DNA from: Amoeboaphelidium protococcarum X5
Lineage: Eukaryota; Fungi; Aphelidiomycota
DNA: 64,000 nucleotides
Assembly (NCBI GenBank): GCA_023515725.1
Contig: JALDTO010000179.1
Coordinates: 392,053-456,052 of the forward strand
Reading direction: 5' to 3'
Both the position numbers and the translations under genes were made by a program. Below the pieces are notes generated by a model. The model was given only the letters and a program-made list of their open reading frames with translations, made no database searches and was not told the DNA's origin. This document shows, piece by piece, positions 47,112 through 59,650 of the stretch (positions are counted from its first letter, which is position 1; every line of letters begins with the position of its first letter).

Positions 47112-47417
47112 AGTCTGACTTGATTGATGCTTATGAGCTATATAGCGTGCTAGAATATGATACAGCAGTGCGGGCGAAGAGTAATGATCAATAAAATTGG
47201 AATCATAATAGACATCCCATCTCTAGGAATCATTAAGAATTTGCATTGATTGAATCCGATTGATTTGGTACTTTAGAGGTCTCGTTTGAGTTTTGTCTAG
47301 TTGTCACTGTGACTTGATCGGTGGAATGCAATGACGCGCTGGTGAGAGCTACAAAGCCGTGACTAAACTCATTGCGACATTTGCAATATCCTACTGTAAA
47401 TTTCAAGATTGCGAATA

Positions 47418-48801
47418 ATGCTGTGGTTAATATGTGCAGTGTGTGTTATGACATTGAATGTCATAGACTCCGCCAGAATATTTGAGTGTGACAATGTGGC
47501 ACTCTCCCTGTTGAATGGTATACTTCCTGATATTGTTTCGGTCAAGATTGCTGACATGGCCTTCTTATTGCTGCCTGATGAAATCGCGAATTTCGCTGCA
47601 CCCGCTATGTCTCTATTGAAACAATGCACTCTGCATGAAGACGTGAAAATGCGCGCCTACTCTTCTAATAATGTTACAGTTCAAAAAGATCCTCCCAACT
47701 GGCCTCTTCGCGCAATTGATACTAGACAGCAAGAGCTTACTGCGGACTATACATTTCCGGAATCAGCGGGTAATGGTTCTTACATTTACATAGTTGACTC
47801 AGGTATAACCACCAACCACGTTGAATTTCTATCACCAAACAATTGTTCTGAATCTAGAGCTTCATTTGGCGCGTCTTTTATCGCTGATCCATCCAGAGGT
47901 AAGTTGTTTATAGTTTAATATTCACCCAAAATGAGTGCATATTTACCAAATATTAAGTGTAGATGATGTGAATGGACACGGAACTATAGTTGCAGGAATG
48001 GCAATAGGAAATACAGTGGGCGTCGCTAAATAAGCTTAAGCTATTGGAGTGCAAGTTCTGGATCAGAATGGAGAGGCTAACGTATCAGTAATTCTGAGAG
48101 GACTTGAATGGGCCTACGATGACGCAGTATCCCGCAATCTATCTCGAGGATCTGCAGTTATTAATTTGTCGCTGGGTGGCTTTTATAGCAGTGCGTTGAA
48201 TCGCGCCGTTAATCGCATCTCTGACGAGGGAGTTCCCATTGTGGCAGCAGCTGGGAATGAAGGCATATCAGCTTGTCTATTCAGTCCTGCCTCTGCCGGG
48301 GAGGCTATCACTGTGGGAAGTTTCAATCAAGACTTTCGAATATCCACGTTTTCAAATACTGGACGCTGTGTGGATATCTACGCTGGTGGGGAGGACATCT
48401 ACTCGTCAGTTTTTGAGAATGCGCCAATATCTGAACTGTCCGGTATCAGGAAGGTGAGTACGCAGTGTTCTAACGATTCAACTTATATTGAGCAGAGCGG
48501 AACATCATTTTCTGCTCCGGTGGTAAGTGGAATATTGGCAATCTATCAGTCTCATTTTAAAATTAATTAGACAGATGCAATCGATCCTGACAGTTATTCG
48601 TCTGATCTAAAGGAGCTCTTGATTGATCAATCCACTTCTCAACGTCTGGGAAGATCCCAAGTCTAAGTTGCTTACGTATATCCTCCTCAGTTTTAAACTC
48701 CTAATGTATCAAACAGCCAATCCTCTGCCAGTCCAATTTCGCTCCGGAAGTTGCTACCAGTAATCATTGCAATTTCAATTGTCTTGATGAGTGTCAGTTG
48801 A
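47418..48801 (+). CDS. Secreted subtilisin (S8, proteinase K-like) with GPI/TM-like C-terminus; intron 47899..47962
   Basis: Signal peptide, prodomain, catalytic triad YIVDSG / NGHGT (restored by splicing) / SGTSFSAP, AAGN, then Ser-rich spacer and hydrophobic tail LLPVIIAISIVLMSVS. Confidence 0.92.
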
Positions 48802-50607: not shown

Positions 50608-51939
50608 ATGAAAACACTTTTGAATTTGACACTAGCTGCTTCCATAATCGTCGGATTGTCCATCAATTCTGTGATTGCTATCAATATTGGCGCGTTGTTT
50701 GGGCGTCATGATATCAATAGCCGCGAATTTGAGAATTTTAGTTAGATGCCATTTGGTTAAAAGGACCTGGTGCTATTTCCATCGTATGGTGTATTGAAGT
50801 ATTAGCTGCCGTGCACTTCTGAACGTGCATGTCCAAGAGTTTACTCTGTGCATGTATAAGCCGTTGCTTTGCAGTATACAGACGAGGCTGGAAATTTTGC
50901 CAGATTCCAATCTTTCGTCGACATTGACAATGATGATTATGGCCCTGATTCTTACCTCCCTCCGCTGGAAAAGACATTGCAGTTCAACAATTTTAAACAC
51001 TTTTTCGCGGATGATCTGAATAACCGCTCTGTCCGCTTAGACTTGAGCTCTAACATCAATGATCGCAAGTCTGTGCGAATACTGAATGCCACCTCTTCCG
51101 TTGCTGATAATCTGGTCGTCTCATACAACACGACAGCTGTTGAGGCAATTACTGGTTAAGATGGATTCATTGAGCTTGATCTTCTAGTAGAAGTAAATGG
51201 ATATTACGATGGATCATAGCTGACTGTCAATGGTGAATTTGAAGGTGTAAGTACCAGTGCTGAATTATTTCTGCACGGTTAGAAAGGCCTTACTGTTGTA
51301 TTTGATGTCGACGAAACTCTTAAGCTTTATGGTAGAGGTTTGGAAGCCATCAAATCTCTCTTATTCCGCAAATACGTCCCCGTACCTGGCGTTGTCCCAC
51401 AGGTCCAGAAATGGTATAATGATAGCATTCCTCGCTCTGGCGATAATTTTAGTATGCCAATGTTCTACTTCTTGAGTGCTGGTCCATGGCCGATGGCATC
51501 TGCTAATCTCGCTTTTGTCAAGAATTTCAGTATTCCGTTTGGTCCTGTCGCTGTAAACAAATTCTCTGTGAATATTGACTCTCCTGCAGAGTTATCCAAG
51601 ACGCTATCTATTGTGAATTCTTAACAATTGAAAACTGACGCGTTCGCAAAGTTGTTCAGAAGAATGCCTAACAGAACTTATATCCTGAGTGGTGACAGCG
51701 TCATGAAGGACCCAGAGTTCTAGACTGGCATTATGTAGAACCCGGAATTTGCTTCGTAAATTGCTATGCAGACTATTCGCATTTCGCCGGCTGTCGGTTG
51801 GATAAAGAATCGTCAAGGTCGCTTCAACAAAGTTCTGAAGGATCTTCCTGAAAGCAAGTATTTGCTGTTTAGGAATATCACTGAAATGTCTCTAATAGAC
51901 ACGCGTCAGATTTTAATTAACAATGGTGCGAACAATTGA
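50608..51939 (+). CDS. Secreted App1-like phosphatidate phosphatase (HAD-like, DUF2183)
   Basis: Signal peptide MKTLLNLTLAASIIVGLSINSVIA; VVFDVDETLK (DxDxT), VPG, FYFLSAGPW, MPNRTYILSGDSVMKDPE; 444 codons. Confidence 0.82.
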
Positions 51940-52189: not shown

Positions 52190-53216
52190 ATGTATTAGAA
52201 TTAATAAAGTGTAAATTAAACCACGACTTACTGCACAAAATGTCAGCAGTAATGCGAAGATGAAGCCTTCATAGCGTTGCGAGATGGCACATCGTTTCAC
52301 CGTCAGTGTTTCACTTGTGACATTTGTTAAAATGAGATGCCATTGAAATTCGCCTTTAAAAATGGGAAATATTATCATACAGAGGTAAGGCACTACGTTA
52401 TCAATATTGTTATATTAAATCTCTATATTTATTAAAGTTGCCGTATGTAGTGTTATGCCAATGCCAAAGCAACGGCGCCTAAATGTTTCAAGTGCGAAGG
52501 GCCAATAATCGGTAGCGAAGTGAGCGTTGTGCTGGGAAATGATATGAAATTTCACGCAAGATGCTTCGTCTGCGATGGATGTGGCCAGTAATTATCCGAC
52601 AGATTTTATTAAAATAATAGCTTGTTTTATCATCAAGAGGTAATGTTAAATGCTTATTGCAAATATCACATAATAAATATTTTCTAATCGAATGTAGTGC
52701 GTGATTTGCTCCCTCTGCAACAGCAATCTGAATGGTCTCAATTTCAGTCAATTACAAGACGGCGGCTACGTGTGCGATCCGTGTCTCTATCAGTAGATGC
52801 GGCAAGAAGAAAAGATCACGGCTGTTAATGGACAACACGACTCTAATCCGGATCCAGTCCCATTACAACAGTAATATTATGGATAACCGGCAATGGCATA
52901 GCCGAGATAGCAGCCATTTGTATAGGCACAGGATCAATACGCTAATGCTGCCTACTTTCAATAATAACAACCACAATATGTGCAGCAAAATCAGTATGGG
53001 TATCAAGTGCCGCAGAATTATGTGCCACAGTAGGGTGTGCCTCAAAGAGCGCCGACAGCTCAGAGTGCCCTTTTAAACAGTCACAATAACTATGGATCTC
53101 AAGGCTCACTAGCTCATCAGGCGCAAATTGTCAATGGCGGCTAGTATTATCAACAGTAGTAGCAGTAGGTCTATCAGCAATAATAATAACAGTTTCGGAA
53201 TCAGTACGCTCGCTGA
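52190..53216 (+). CDS. LIM-type zinc-finger protein with Q/Y-rich tail; introns 52385..52450 and 52640..52697
   Basis: Spliced product has five fingers (CTKC..HRQC, CDIC..HTEC, CFKC..HARC, CDGC..HQEC, CSLC..CDPC), then a Q/Y/P-rich region and TGA. Confidence 0.88.
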
Positions 53217-53434
53217 AACCGAGTGTTTGAATGCGCGCGCGGCAGATCGATTGAGGTTTCACCTGTTTCAGCGCAATGATGAAATGCTATAAATAGATTA
53301 ATTACCTTTCAATCAATCTCTTTCACTGAGCACTCATTATTTCCCCTCATATTATTATTATTATTGCATCCAAGTTGCCTGTCTTCTTTAGATATTTATA
53401 TACTTTGTAAATTTGTAAATTGATAAGGATTTTG

Positions 53435-55687
53435 ATGTTTAAAAAGAAGAAGGAAGTAGTTGCAGGATAAAGTTTCAGCACGTTACCATAGAGTCCATCT
53501 ACGTAGGGCGGCTACATGGCGGGTGGATAGTAGAATGGTTATAATATGGTTGGTAATCAGCATCCAGCTTTGGCTCTGGCTTAGATGAGTGCCAATTAAC
53601 AATATGCTGGATAGTAGTAACAGATGCAGAATTATAACAATCCCGGTGGATATGGAGTCAACGCTATGGCTGGACTGCCGTTATAACAGTAGTAATAGCA
53701 AATGATGATGATGCAACAAGGATCCCCTGCTGTACCGCGCCAGACACCTCAAGGTTATGGTCAAGGTGCGGCACTGCAAAATCCTATGGCACAGTAAAAT
53801 TAGATGCAGTAACAGCAGATGTTGTAGCAACAGCAAGGTGCTGGAATGTATTCGTATCAACCTCAGTAGTAGAATGTTGCATAGAATCAGCAGAATCCGA
53901 TGGCAATGGGCCAAGTTGCTGGTAATAACTATGGCGCAATGTAATCTGGATAGAGGCCGTAGTAGTAGTTATAATAGCAATAGTTTCCACCTTAGATGCA
54001 GATGCAGCAATAGATGTAGTAGCCTCAAATGCTCTAGTAATAGCAGATGCAGAAACAACAATAGCAGATGTAATATCAGTAACAGCAGCAACAAAACTTT
54101 TAACCTCAGGGACCGCCTTGTCTTAAATGCTCTAAGGCTTGTGATCAAAGGAATGGATTTATAGGCTTAAAAGATGGTTCAAACTTTCATAAGGAATGCT
54201 TTACTTGTGGACTCTGTGACTAGGTGTTGCCTCTGAAATTTGTCCACAAGCGTAAAAAGTATTTCCACACTGAATGCTATGATCACATTAAAGCTACACT
54301 TCCTGCCTGTGCTCATTGCAAGATTCAGCTACTTCCCATGGAGCCAACTCTATAATTGCCTACTGGGTCCACGTATCACGAAGAGTGCTTCGTTTGTGAT
54401 CAGTGTACTAAGCCTCTGGGATAAATTGTGTTGCCATTTGGGGAGTTGCTATTCCACCAAGAGTGTATGGGATGTTTTAATTGTAATAGATCTCTGGCCG
54501 GTGTGTAGTATGATCAATTGCCTGAGGGATATTACGCGTGCATCAACTGTCTATCGTCAATATGGCCTGAGCTGTATGCTACGAGTAACCCAATCTCTAA
54601 GATTGCAACCCCGCTTAACTAAAGCAATAATACTTTACCACAGCTCCAAGGAAGTTAAAGCCCTCTGCCAAGTGGTTAGAATTCTGTACGCGTCAATACT
54701 TAGACAAGATCTTAGTCTAACACTTAGACTTTTGGGACTGTGCGGGCAAGCTCTAGTTCACCAAATACACAGGTGGAGTCCATCACTCCATAGAATTTTT
54801 CCGACTATGGAGATTATAGTCAGACACTGCCATCAAAAATGGCAAAGATGCACTTACAAAGTGTGTAATCTGGTGGTACTAATAGTCCTAGTGGATAGGC
54901 TCTGAATAAGCCTCCATCTATTAATCATTTGTAGTAGGCTTTTGGTGTGCCATCACAATAGTCTATTCCGGACATCAAGTCCCTGCCACCACCAATATCT
55001 ACTCCATCCAAATCCAATACTCCCCGATAGAGTGTGGCGATCAATAACCTACCTCCACCTGCATAAATCCCACCACTTGGCACACTTCCCACTCAGTTGC
55101 CGCCACCAGCTTCTCTACCAAATGGATTACCTCCACCTCCATCATTGCCTAAGAATAAGCCGCAGCTGCCATCAACTCTGCCGATACTGCCCGAGAGAAG
55201 TCACAGTCTGACAGATTCGATGAGAGCATAGCTACCTTTGCCTCCTTAGTAGTCGTCAGCTTCATCTTTACCTGCCCCACCTCAACCTCCGTCTTCATAA
55301 TAATCCACAGCGTCTGCACCGCCACCGGTTGTTCACTCCAGCACGGAGCCATTGCCCGAAAGTAAGGGAGATTTGTTGTCTCAAATTCGTAAGGCGTCAG
55401 TTCAGAATCTCAAAAAAGTTGATAATGTCGTGGGAAATGGAGCAATATCTGCGCAAGGTAAAGGTGTGGCCGCCGGAGCTGGAGGTAAAGTGTCTGCAAG
55501 TGCTTTTGGTAAGAGTGGCTTGTAATCTGCTCTGGCTCAGTCTCTGAATAAGATGAAGGCTAAAGTTGCCGTTGAAGAGGAAGACGATGGACCGGAAGAG
55601 GCGGTCATCAATATCTCGTCACATCTGAACAATAGGAGAAAGCATATTGAAGAGGGAGGCAATGAGGCTGACGATGATTGGGATTGA
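53435..55687 (+). CDS. LIM + proline-rich + WH2-C-A (WCA) protein; candidate Arp2/3 nucleation-promoting factor
   Basis: 751 open codons: Q/M-rich N-terminus, five LIM-type fingers (about 54119-54550), polyproline region, WH2 GDLLSQIRKASVQNLKKV (55367-55420), C motif GLQSALAQSLNKMKAKV, end EEGGNEADDDWD. Confidence 0.88.
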
Positions 55688-55844
55688 TTTTGTCTATGTA
55701 AGTGCTGTGACTTTATTATGGTGCTGCTGATAAGAGCATTGGCATACAAGTAAAGAGAAAGACAGATAGAGAGAGATAGAACCATTTAGTGCATGAATTT
55801 AGCTGTCATAAGTATAGAATTTTATAAAAATTCCGCCAAACCTT

Positions 55845-57407
55845 TCACCAATCGTCCTTGTCAGCAGATACTCGTTCAGGTGAAGTTTCTCTCATTGCGA
55901 GTCTTTTAGAGCTTAATGAACGCTACAACTCACTTTATAGATCATCGCCACTCGATGCCAAATTCATTTTACTTAAAGATTTGGACAATGATGTCTTTAG
56001 ACCAGAAGGTTAATTAGAACTAGACTCTTCTCTTAAGAATGATGGAGTTGAAGCATCTCTCACATCATCCACCTTGTTTAGTTTTTCAATCGAAGATTTT
56101 CTAATCTGATCCAGAAGATTGGTTGGCAGAGCACTAGAGCTAGATGACTTTCTCAAAGGCGTCTACTCCTAAGATGATACAACTTGTTCAGGAGCTTTGG
56201 GAGCAGGAGGGACAACTTTACTCTAACCAGGAGTTTCTTTAGTAGAGCTGTTAGCAGTGTTGCTTTACTTTGGAATAGCTTTATTTTCACCAATAGAAAC
56301 TTTAGTTTACTCAGTAGATTTAAACTGTTCTCCAATGACAGCCTTACCAGTATTTGAGACACCAGGCCCTGTAACATTCTAGTTAGAGTCCATTTTACCC
56401 ACACTGCTTTATAAAGACTACTAAGACGGTATAAACGTGTTCATTGGTTTACTAGGCTAAGACTGACCCATAGGCTTGCTGTTATTGTAACTATCAGCAG
56501 GCTTTAATTATTCAGTAGGTTTGATAGAAGCTTGTGAAGGAGGCACTTTCAAAGGCACAGACGAATTACTTTAAGAAGATGCCGGAATTTGACTGTTCAA
56601 TTTGGACAGCAAGTCTTTAGTTTTATTACTTGCGTTAGGTACTTCAGTCTTGGCCTAAAGATTCTTATTCGTCACACCTTATACATTCTAGCTCTTACTA
56701 GAGGCAATAGGCGCGCCATAAGTGACTCCAAATTTATCAAAAACATCACTGTTACCGATACCAGCTTTCGCTTCCCGTCTAGCCAACTCAGACTCTCTAT
56801 TAACGGGATCGTAACGCTTCTCTATGCATTTACCGCAAGTGAACACACCATCAATCTCTTTGAATCGGACGCCTCTATCACCGCTACTACTATCACTCAA
56901 GAGACCGGATTTACACACACTACATTTAGGGAAGCAATCGATATGGTACTTTTCACTCTGGTACGTGGTGTACTTGTCATTAGTTAGAATGGCTCGCTTA
57001 CAGGTGCTACACTTGGGACTAAATACGTCCATATAGCACGCCTCATCATACCATACACCTTAATCTTCAAAATACTAACCACCGGCTATTGTCTTATTGC
57101 ATTTACTACATTTGAGACAGTCGGCGTGCATCAGCTGACCATTTATGCGAACAGCTTTACCGCCGGGAAGTAATGGCTTCTTACACTTGATACAACCATC
57201 GCCAGAGGAGGTCTAATTGCTAGCGATCGCTTTATCCACACATTACAAATGATACAACTTCTAATCATGCATAGTATATTCTGCCGGGAGGGGCAATTTA
57301 CAGTGATTACAATTGAAACATCGAGCATGTACATTCACACCATCATCCAGTTGAGCATACGATTCTCCGCCAGCAATAGTCTTTCCGCAAGTATTACACA
57401 CTGGCAT
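55845..57407 (-). CDS. Second LIM + WH2-C-A protein (paralog, convergent)
   Basis: 521 open codons: three LIM-type domains from residue 4, S/P-rich linker, WH2 NLLDQIRKSSIEKLNKVDDVRDASTP, GLKTSLSKSLSKMN, DLQSELQRSLSSKRLAM, end ADKDDW. Confidence 0.88.
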
Positions 57408-57739: not shown

Positions 57740-59650
57740 TCAAAAGATACAGCCAACATCGCGAGAAGATCGACCGGCGGCAGTGGATTATGATGCTTAT
57801 GATGATGGAATAGGCTTGGTGGAGGATCCCTGCTTGACACCAACTTGCTGCTTTTGCTGCTATTACTTTTTAAATATTCCCTTCAGATTATCCTCAAATG
57901 AACCAGACTTGATCTATACATTACCGCCATTCATATTACTAGTAGAATTAGAAGAGTAGCGAGCTTGACTACTTTTTGCACCACCAGCAGTAGATGATGA
58001 TGATGACCCGACAAAGTTACCGCTACCTTACGCACCAACACCTGATTACAACTGCTACTATAAACGCTACCTAGCCTCCACCGAATTCCTGATATGATTC
58101 AATAGCTCAGCAGGAGGTACTGGGCATGCGCGATTGTTCTTGAACTTGGCATAAGATCCATTTAAAAGAGGATTCTTATCAGCCTCAGAGCCAAACAGAA
58201 ATAGTCCAGTAGGCTCATGCTTCTTCTTAATTAACGGATTATCATTGATGATATTCTATACACCACCATGAGACTATTGAGTAAGAGATTTAAAGTCACG
58301 CTGCGCCTATGCCTATTACTCAATCTGATCGCTTATAGACTATTTAGCAGCTTCGGTCAATTTCTTCAATTTAAGATTCTCCTCATACACAATCTGATAA
58401 TCTTCATCCAATAACTAATTAGTCTTCTTGACCATTGTTTTATCTAACTAAAATAATTATTATTTATACTACTGCTATTACTGTTTGGCACTCAACTAGT
58501 TTGCATTATTATGATTTCTGTTTTTTGGTACATGGTCACCATTGATATTAAACCCACCAAAGACCATTCCAAACTTTTTATCTAGTTCAGTGAGGCTACC
58601 ATGTTTATGATGTCGAGACTAAGGCTTCACCTGAGTAACTTTAAACTGATATGGAGACTACGCCTTCAGTGTACCTTTCGTAGATAATGATGATGATGAC
58701 GAAATACCAATTTAGCGCTGCATATCATCTTTAAACTACTCCATGGATTAAGAAAACATCTCCTGGATCTTGTCATTAAGGATAAAGTCTGGCAATTGAG
58801 CACCATCTTAATTTCTCCCCGTAGAGCTTTTAGAACTGACACCAGATTTCTTACTACCACCACCACCACCACCACTTGCAGCTTATTAAATATCAGGCGC
58901 AGAGAGTGGAATTTACGTACCATCTTGCTCATTGACAAATACATTCTTATCCACATCAAATGTGAACGATGGTCCAGGCAGATGTTGAAATCCTAAGTCT
59001 TTCATCATCTTGAGCATAGTCTCCCTGGTGGGAAATTCAAAGTTGGCCTCTTCAAAATCTTCTTCATCGAAACTCGAATAGTCCTCCTCCTCATCTTCAT
59101 CATCTTATACCTATTTACCAGCATCTTTATCCGCTTGTACGCTATCCTTAGTGATAGAATCAGTGGAAAATGGCATCTTTGTGACAGTTGCGATAGAAGA
59201 TAGAGCATCCTGAGAATTATGCCGGTTCAACTCTGCATTCAGTTAAGCTTTGAGGGGACGCGTCAGATTGTGTAATGTCATTTTGTCCATATCCAATTCT
59301 AGCTCCTCTACCACTTCATCATCATCATCATCATCTATGTCAAGGTCATCTAAAAGATGAATCCCTTCAGCATCGAAATCTTAAACGTCATCCAGTATGG
59401 TAGGTACAATGGCAGATGATTACACCTTTTGCGGCTCTTTCACAGTAAGCTTAATATTTCCCACAGAAAGACTAAACTGCTGATCTCCCTAAATCAAATG
59501 TCCCTTCTCATGAGCCTCAGCAATAAGCCGGAGCACATTGGCCACCTCTTGCTTTGACCGTTAGAAAGGCCAGTGAAGGAGGATATGGATAATCTCCTAA
59601 TACTGCTCATAGTCAGTCTCCATCACAGTCTATATCTACGAGACTGTCAT
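57740..59650 (-). CDS. Hypothetical protein (acidic, G/S- and Q-rich low-complexity)
   Basis: 637 codons with no TGA under table 6; no domain recognised. Confidence 0.75.

Follow-up and report, generated by a model that had tools for sequence, protein, structure and literature searches.

Can tandem LIM zinc fingers aim an activator of the Arp2/3 complex? This question is raised by two convergent genes, A and B, that lie within a stretch of 64,000 nucleotides (hereafter the window) of the genome of Amoeboaphelidium protococcarum, an alga-infecting parasite from a phagotrophic and amoeboid sister group of fungi. Both encode LIM fingers followed towards the C-terminus by a WH2 motif, two amphipathic helices (C1 and C2) and an acidic end with a Trp, the order known from the WH2-C-acidic tail (WCA, or VCA) of WASP-family nucleation-promoting factors (NPFs). 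Our analysis points to A and B as paralogous, lineage-specific and LIM-targeted class I NPFs, a reading that we regard as probable and under which Arp2/3 activation is predicted.

LIM fingers and C-terminal tails of genes A and B

A sequence-only reading of this DNA had held that both genes are invisible unless TAA and TAG are read as Gln, and this was borne out by translation with table 6, which turned each into a single open reading frame (ORF) despite 64 TAR codons in A and 23 in B. Amoeboaphelidium protococcarum is an aphelid reported to read both triplets as Gln (PMC6299283), and the local validity of this code is confirmed by the number of ORFs of at least 300 aa in the window (31 under table 6 vs. 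2 under table 11), as well as by the exchanges between TAR and CAR codons that separate the homeologous copies (nine in gene A and five in gene B). The translation of A is identical to the stored NCBI protein P0007, and the counterpart of B is P0010, a 520-aa NCBI entry on the same contig; the NCBI annotation of both is only 'hypothetical protein', unnamed and with a LIM match. The features of both genes, together with those of a LIM paralog upstream, gene C, are collected in Table 1.

Table 1. Positions of genes A, B and C and of their parts, in window coordinates
Feature	Position	Strand	Description
Gene A	53435..55687	+	750 aa; single intronless table 6 ORF; TGA stop
A low-complexity N-terminus	53435..54112	+	aa 1-226; rich in Gln (35%), Met, Gly and Asn; dN/dS 0.08
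A five zinc fingers (2.5 LIM)	54119..54550	+	LIM1 aa 229-281; three fingers aa 292-372
A proline-rich region	54932..55354	+	five PPP runs; disordered by prediction
A WH2	55367..55420	+	aa 645-662; perfect match to Kollmar's pattern
A helix C1	55520..55567	+	aa 696-711; amphipathic, three spaced hydrophobes; Met replaces the usual Arg; invariant in 4 copies
A helix C2	55601..55648	+	aa 723-738; amphipathic, basic cluster, terminal Ile
A acidic end	55649..55687	+	penultimate Trp 749, then TGA
Gene B	55845..57407	-	520 aa; single intronless table 6 ORF; TGA stop
B three LIM domains (six fingers)	56826..57398	-	aa 4-56, 72-124 and 133-194
B helical segment after LIM3	56712..56816	-	aa 198-232; helices predicted; 1/37 columns variable
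B WH2	56070..56120	-	aa 430-446; LKKV box with Asn in place of Lys; invariant in 4 copies
B helix C1	55953..56000	-	aa 470-485; amphipathic
B helix C2	55893..55940	-	aa 490-505; full match to Kollmar's C description
B acidic end	55845..55892	-	weakly acidic; terminal Trp 520, then TGA
Gene C	52190..53216	+	five-finger LIM gene paralogous to A; no WCA; tail rich in Gln and Tyr; introns 52385-52450 and 52640-52697

Every motif quoted in the sequence-only reading (LIM fingers, linker, WH2, amphipathic helix and terminal acidic Trp) was recovered in both proteins. The LIM regions exhibit the double zinc-finger spacing and the fold of this domain, since Pfam LIM scored above its cut-off in A (50.7 bits) and in B (75.2 bits), the LIM region of A had LIM matches in PDB, and a model of the B N-terminus (pLDDT 77) retrieved LIM structures of PINCH, LMO and FHL in Foldseek, the best of them PINCH1 LIM4-5 with an E value of 1e-9. 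The fifth finger of A is of an odd form. Following LIM3 of B, a helical segment that is also retained in a partial duplicate of the gene (P0009) appears as a candidate autoinhibitory or partner-binding element. The linkers had been described as Pro/Ser-rich, which suits A, where the Pro content ahead of the tail (26%) is similar to that of WASP from the same genome (29%), but not B, whose Ser-rich and fast-evolving linker has 12% Pro and no run of three prolines.

The tails were compared with the patterns for WH2, C and acidic end of Kollmar 2012 (PMC3298513). The WH2 of A matches without mismatches and that of B with one, the same number as in WASP and SCAR of this genome, and the order WH2, C and acidic Trp appeared in none of 200,000 shuffles of each protein. 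In its strict form the C motif consists of three spaced hydrophobes, a Lys/Arg doublet and a closing hydrophobe; C2 of B fits this description, and C1 of A fits a relaxed pattern only, as does the aphelid WASP. C2 lies 26 aa (A) and 30 aa (B) from the Trp, similar to the C motif of aphelid WASP (33 aa) and SCAR (28 aa), whereas C1 lies 50-53 aa away and carries Lys-Met at the usual Arg site; hence C2 is the positional C motif and C1 an addition. The C motif had been likened to that of Las17, and the amphipathic helix so described is indeed present as C1, but with Met at the conserved Arg, and it is C2 that holds the canonical position. A short acidic stretch without Trp separates C1 from C2 in A, and an AlphaFold model of the A tail, of low confidence (mean pLDDT 44), has helices at WH2, C1 and C2 and disorder elsewhere. 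Both tails resemble that of aphelid WASP (p 0.015 for A and p 0.003 for B), which was the best local match of the two NPFs of the genome that were compared. As a lead only, the nearest Atlas clusters to the A tail carry WH2, one of them being named WHAMM-like (score 0.83).

A and B can be aligned over LIM and tail (E 5e-19), and also over the tails alone (p 0.0003, ~34% identity). Since the alignment covers both parts, the two genes go back to a single LIM-WCA fusion with a later duplication.

Predicted Arp2/3 activation and its rivals

The LIM-WCA arrangement is supported as one that agrees with how class I NPFs are defined by sequence, outside every named subfamily. SCAR/WAVE, WASH, WHAMM/JMY, WAWH, WAML and WHIMP place a C-terminal VCA behind a subfamily-specific N-terminus (PMC3298513, PMC10330494), and A and B share this VCA with them, but no LIM is described for these families in either source. 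WH1/CRIB, SHD, WAHD, WMD and IMD were not found in full-length A and B, for which Pfam gives LIM and a weak WH2 only. The likeness to WASP/Las17/Wsp1 goes further, comprising one WH2, an amphipathic C helix, an acidic Trp end and, in A only, a proline-rich region; unlike those proteins, A and B have LIM instead of WH1 or CRIB/GBD, an extra C-like helix and a much less acidic A region. Kollmar et al. take a new kind of N-terminal domain in front of a VCA to mark a new subfamily (PMC3298513), and LIM is not among the VCA N-terminal domains in their survey or in a 2023 review. By this rule LIM-WCA would constitute a new WASP subfamily if the NPF reading holds. The sequence-only reading had gone further and proposed a new NPF class; no named subfamily has this architecture and no description of it was found in a targeted literature search, which covered few subscription papers, but 'class' is too broad a term for something seen so far in one species. 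What sets the subfamilies of the WASP family apart is the module directing their VCA. A LIM-WCA fusion would represent a new route to aim Arp2/3, independent of a Rho-GTPase-binding or WAVE/WASH-complex module.

From the biochemistry of the WASP family, WH2 would deliver monomeric actin, and a branch would start when the acidic Trp and helix C2 contact Arp2/ArpC1 and Arp3, in line with the documented role of the Trp in Arp2/3 engagement (PMC7274804). The proline runs of A would recruit profilin-actin or SH3 partners, and C1, as an extra helix, could bind a second actin or the Arp cleft, or keep the tail shut. A weaker step concerns the LIM fingers, which may localise the protein via cortical F-actin or a partner protein; targeting is assigned to them because no other folded domain (WH1, CRIB, SHD or IMD) is present. 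Taken gene by gene, A quite likely activates Arp2/3, and for B activation is slightly more likely than not.

Several results weigh against an Arp2/3-activating function. The Pfam check proposed by the sequence-only reading succeeded on table 6 translations for LIM in both proteins but not for WH2, which stayed below the cut-off of 23.1 in A (20.3 bits) and in B (15.3 bits), and the B tail alone had no Pfam match at E 0.05. A fails the strict C pattern, C1 for want of Arg and C2 of the first large hydrophobe, as WASP and SCAR of the same genome also do. The acidic region of B is weak and no polyproline precedes its tail; acidic and basic residues at the end number 7 and 3 in A and 5 and 3 in B, compared with 9 and 0 in WASP and 11 and 0 in SCAR. 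No solved VCA was matched by either tail in PDB sequence searches, and a copy of B in strain X5 has lost its stop and with it the terminal Trp position.

The rival that survives best, although improbable, is an actin binder independent of Arp2/3, in which WH2 and C-like helices would bind several monomers in order to nucleate, elongate or sequester, the Trp tail being secondary. C helices can also bind the cleft of actin, and both paralogs have the extra, Arg-less amphipathic helix C1 between WH2 and C2. Tandem-WH2 nucleators such as Spire, Cobl and JMY similarly line up actin-binding-type helices in a row; A and B differ in that only one true WH2 is present, with C and acidic elements behind it in NPF order. 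Against such a function stand the single LKKV-type box of each protein and an acidic Trp end retained in both paralogs despite so little tail identity.

About as improbable is a competing Arp2/3 binder, an Arpin-like brake that LIM would place where branching needs damping. It would apply especially to B, with its weak acidic region, the Asn in the LKKV box, the absence of polyproline and atypical C helices. Arpin-type inhibitors carry an acidic Trp and are not known to have WH2-C; A and B share the acidic Trp end with them and add WH2-C in NPF order. Against a brake, neither WH2 nor the full C pattern varies between copies, C2 being unchanged in the four copies of each gene.

These copies bear on a further alternative, namely LIM adaptors with a decaying, non-functional tail derived from WASP. 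The genome (23.6 Mb) is mostly duplicated, and the whole gene cluster is repeated with 90% nucleotide identity on contig C135, a homeologous region, and recurs with gene content and order unchanged in strain X5. The dN/dS values between homeologs are 0.01 for LIM and 0.02 for WCA in A, 0.06 and 0.08 for the same parts of B, and 0.55 for the B linker, with a dS of 0.25-0.32 in the tail comparisons. Judged from the duplicated copies, purifying selection on both LIM and WCA is strong, and tails as constrained as the LIM domains make decay very unlikely, although tail-less relatives do occur. Gene C has a LIM array without WCA, and strain X5 has a partial B duplicate (MP228_007243, L035 6001-7543) with LIM3 and the post-LIM helices but no WCA, which the gene caller fused to an unrelated N-terminus; a third copy of this part of B was not found in the window assembly. 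In the stop-loss copy of strain X5 (MP228_005508, L066 ~8419), a deletion of 8 nt runs across the stop codon and the frame continues for another 76 aa; this copy, modelled by NCBI as 493 aa, is either a real allele or an assembly error.

The sequence-only reading had asked whether LIM and WCA might lie on separate transcripts. Contigs from two public runs derive from RNA, as the spliced joints in gene C indicate, and cover both A and B without joints; over A, the X5 run has contigs 53388-54588 and 54642-55824, but for neither gene does a single contig reach from LIM to WCA. A single transcript carrying both parts of each gene is thus well supported, though indirectly. Contig depth between the two runs varies far more over B than over A, depth of this kind not being equal to expression. 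An artefact, be it of the genetic code applied, of the assembly or of motifs arising by chance, could invoke the missing spanning contig, but is extremely unlikely given the same gene order in the homeologous region and in a second strain, the joint-free RNA and the shuffle results.

LIM fingers and strained filaments

The sequence-only reading envisaged a force- or adhesion-site-targeted activator, with amoeboid crawling, host penetration or phagocytosis as putative roles. Strain-sensing LIM proteins have at least three tandem LIMs, linkers of 7-8 aa and a conserved Phe (10.1101/2020.03.06.980649; 10.1101/2020.03.06.979245). B has three LIMs and A 2.5, and the linkers, of 10 aa in A and of 15 and 8 aa in B, do not follow the 7-8 aa spacing. 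At the Phe position, set by alignments with FHL2 and paxillin, A has Phe, Val and Tyr and B has Tyr, Tyr (with Phe adjacent) and Phe, so that two of the six residues are Phe and five are aromatic. A and B thus follow the published rules for strain sensors only in part, and of the proposed mechanism force sensing is the least supported element.

Like zyxin/LPP/TRIP6, paxillin/Hic-5/Pxl1, FHL and testin/prickle, A and B combine a tandem LIM fold with a disordered region, and FHL, paxillin and PINCH were the best PDB matches of their LIM regions. Unlike in those proteins, the LIMs of A and B are N-terminal or central, and His-x2-Cys or Asp-x2-Cys closes several of the second fingers. Zyxin, which recruits Ena/VASP, is not known to carry an Arp2/3 activator. 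We consider it doubtful that the LIM fingers of A and B bind strained filaments specifically, and it is unlikely that strain binding by LIM and Arp2/3 activation by the tail are joined into a mechanosensitive NPF, one polypeptide that would turn tension into branched nucleation. A and B offer test objects for asking if branched nucleation can be set off by strain-binding domains, and what role a doubled C helix plays.

Other actin genes, relatives and neighbours

The genome encodes WASP (G000:C264 and C135), a WIP-like gene, SCAR, ARPC2, ARPC4, myosin-I and a myosin II-type tail gene. With WASP, SCAR, WIP and Arp2/3 subunits encoded elsewhere, the LIM-WCA genes are additional to the standard set. 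No WCA end appeared in the other LIM-containing ORFs that were read; four loci gave no ORF by the pattern used, and for genes split by introns the reading stopped short of the final exon. Other unusual LIM architectures occur among them (L018/L019, L024/L025 and L023), with two widely spaced single LIMs or with LIMs in ORFs of ~900-1000 aa. Genome-wide, the pattern [DE][DE]W[DE]-stop had 9 matches against 0 in the control, four of them being the A and SCAR pairs. The five further sites (G000 C98:282316, C98:959345, C146:263612, C154:554667 and C207:783196), none of which lies at a myosin-I TH1 locus, may be the ends of additional Arp2/3-binding proteins. The looser pattern [DE][DE]W-stop was at chance level (90 vs. 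92 in the control); among 30 such sites read, ORFs of more than 250 aa ended only at gene B and WASP.

Outside this species, a profile of the WH2 piece run against 1.84 billion representatives found only A and B as real matches, P0003 and P0004 being rejected as repeat noise. Word-indexed protein searches, of low sensitivity and limited to 32-1437 candidates, and metagenome scans revealed no relative outside A. protococcarum, and no LIM+WH2 cluster was present in Atlas among the sets listed for 30 matches. The searches for relatives were word-limited or built on two sequences, in databases where the presence of other aphelid proteomes is unconfirmed, and the narrow known range of one species limits the weight of the finding.

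Gene C, immediately upstream of A, has LIM matches in each exon and GT..AG joints in RNA contigs, and its spliced model of 300 aa is 43% identical to A over 133 aa. Its two introns interrupt fingers 2 and 4, each directly ahead of the final Cys in a His-x2-Cys ligand pair; A and B are intronless. A single gene comprising C and A was considered and rejected, as no RNA joint connects them and in one run the stretch that separates the two is uncovered. On the other side of the cluster, gene B adjoins a 637-aa ORF (57740-59650, minus strand) that keeps its position in both strains and whose X5 counterpart has no Pfam record. Upstream lies a gene with an APP1 catalytic domain (50608-51939, plus strand), an arrangement shared by strain X5; App1 of yeast is an actin-patch protein, and the adjacency of the APP1 gene to the LIM cluster may be due to chance. 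Further upstream, and likewise in conserved order in X5, is a subtilisin (S8) gene (~47346-48801, plus strand).

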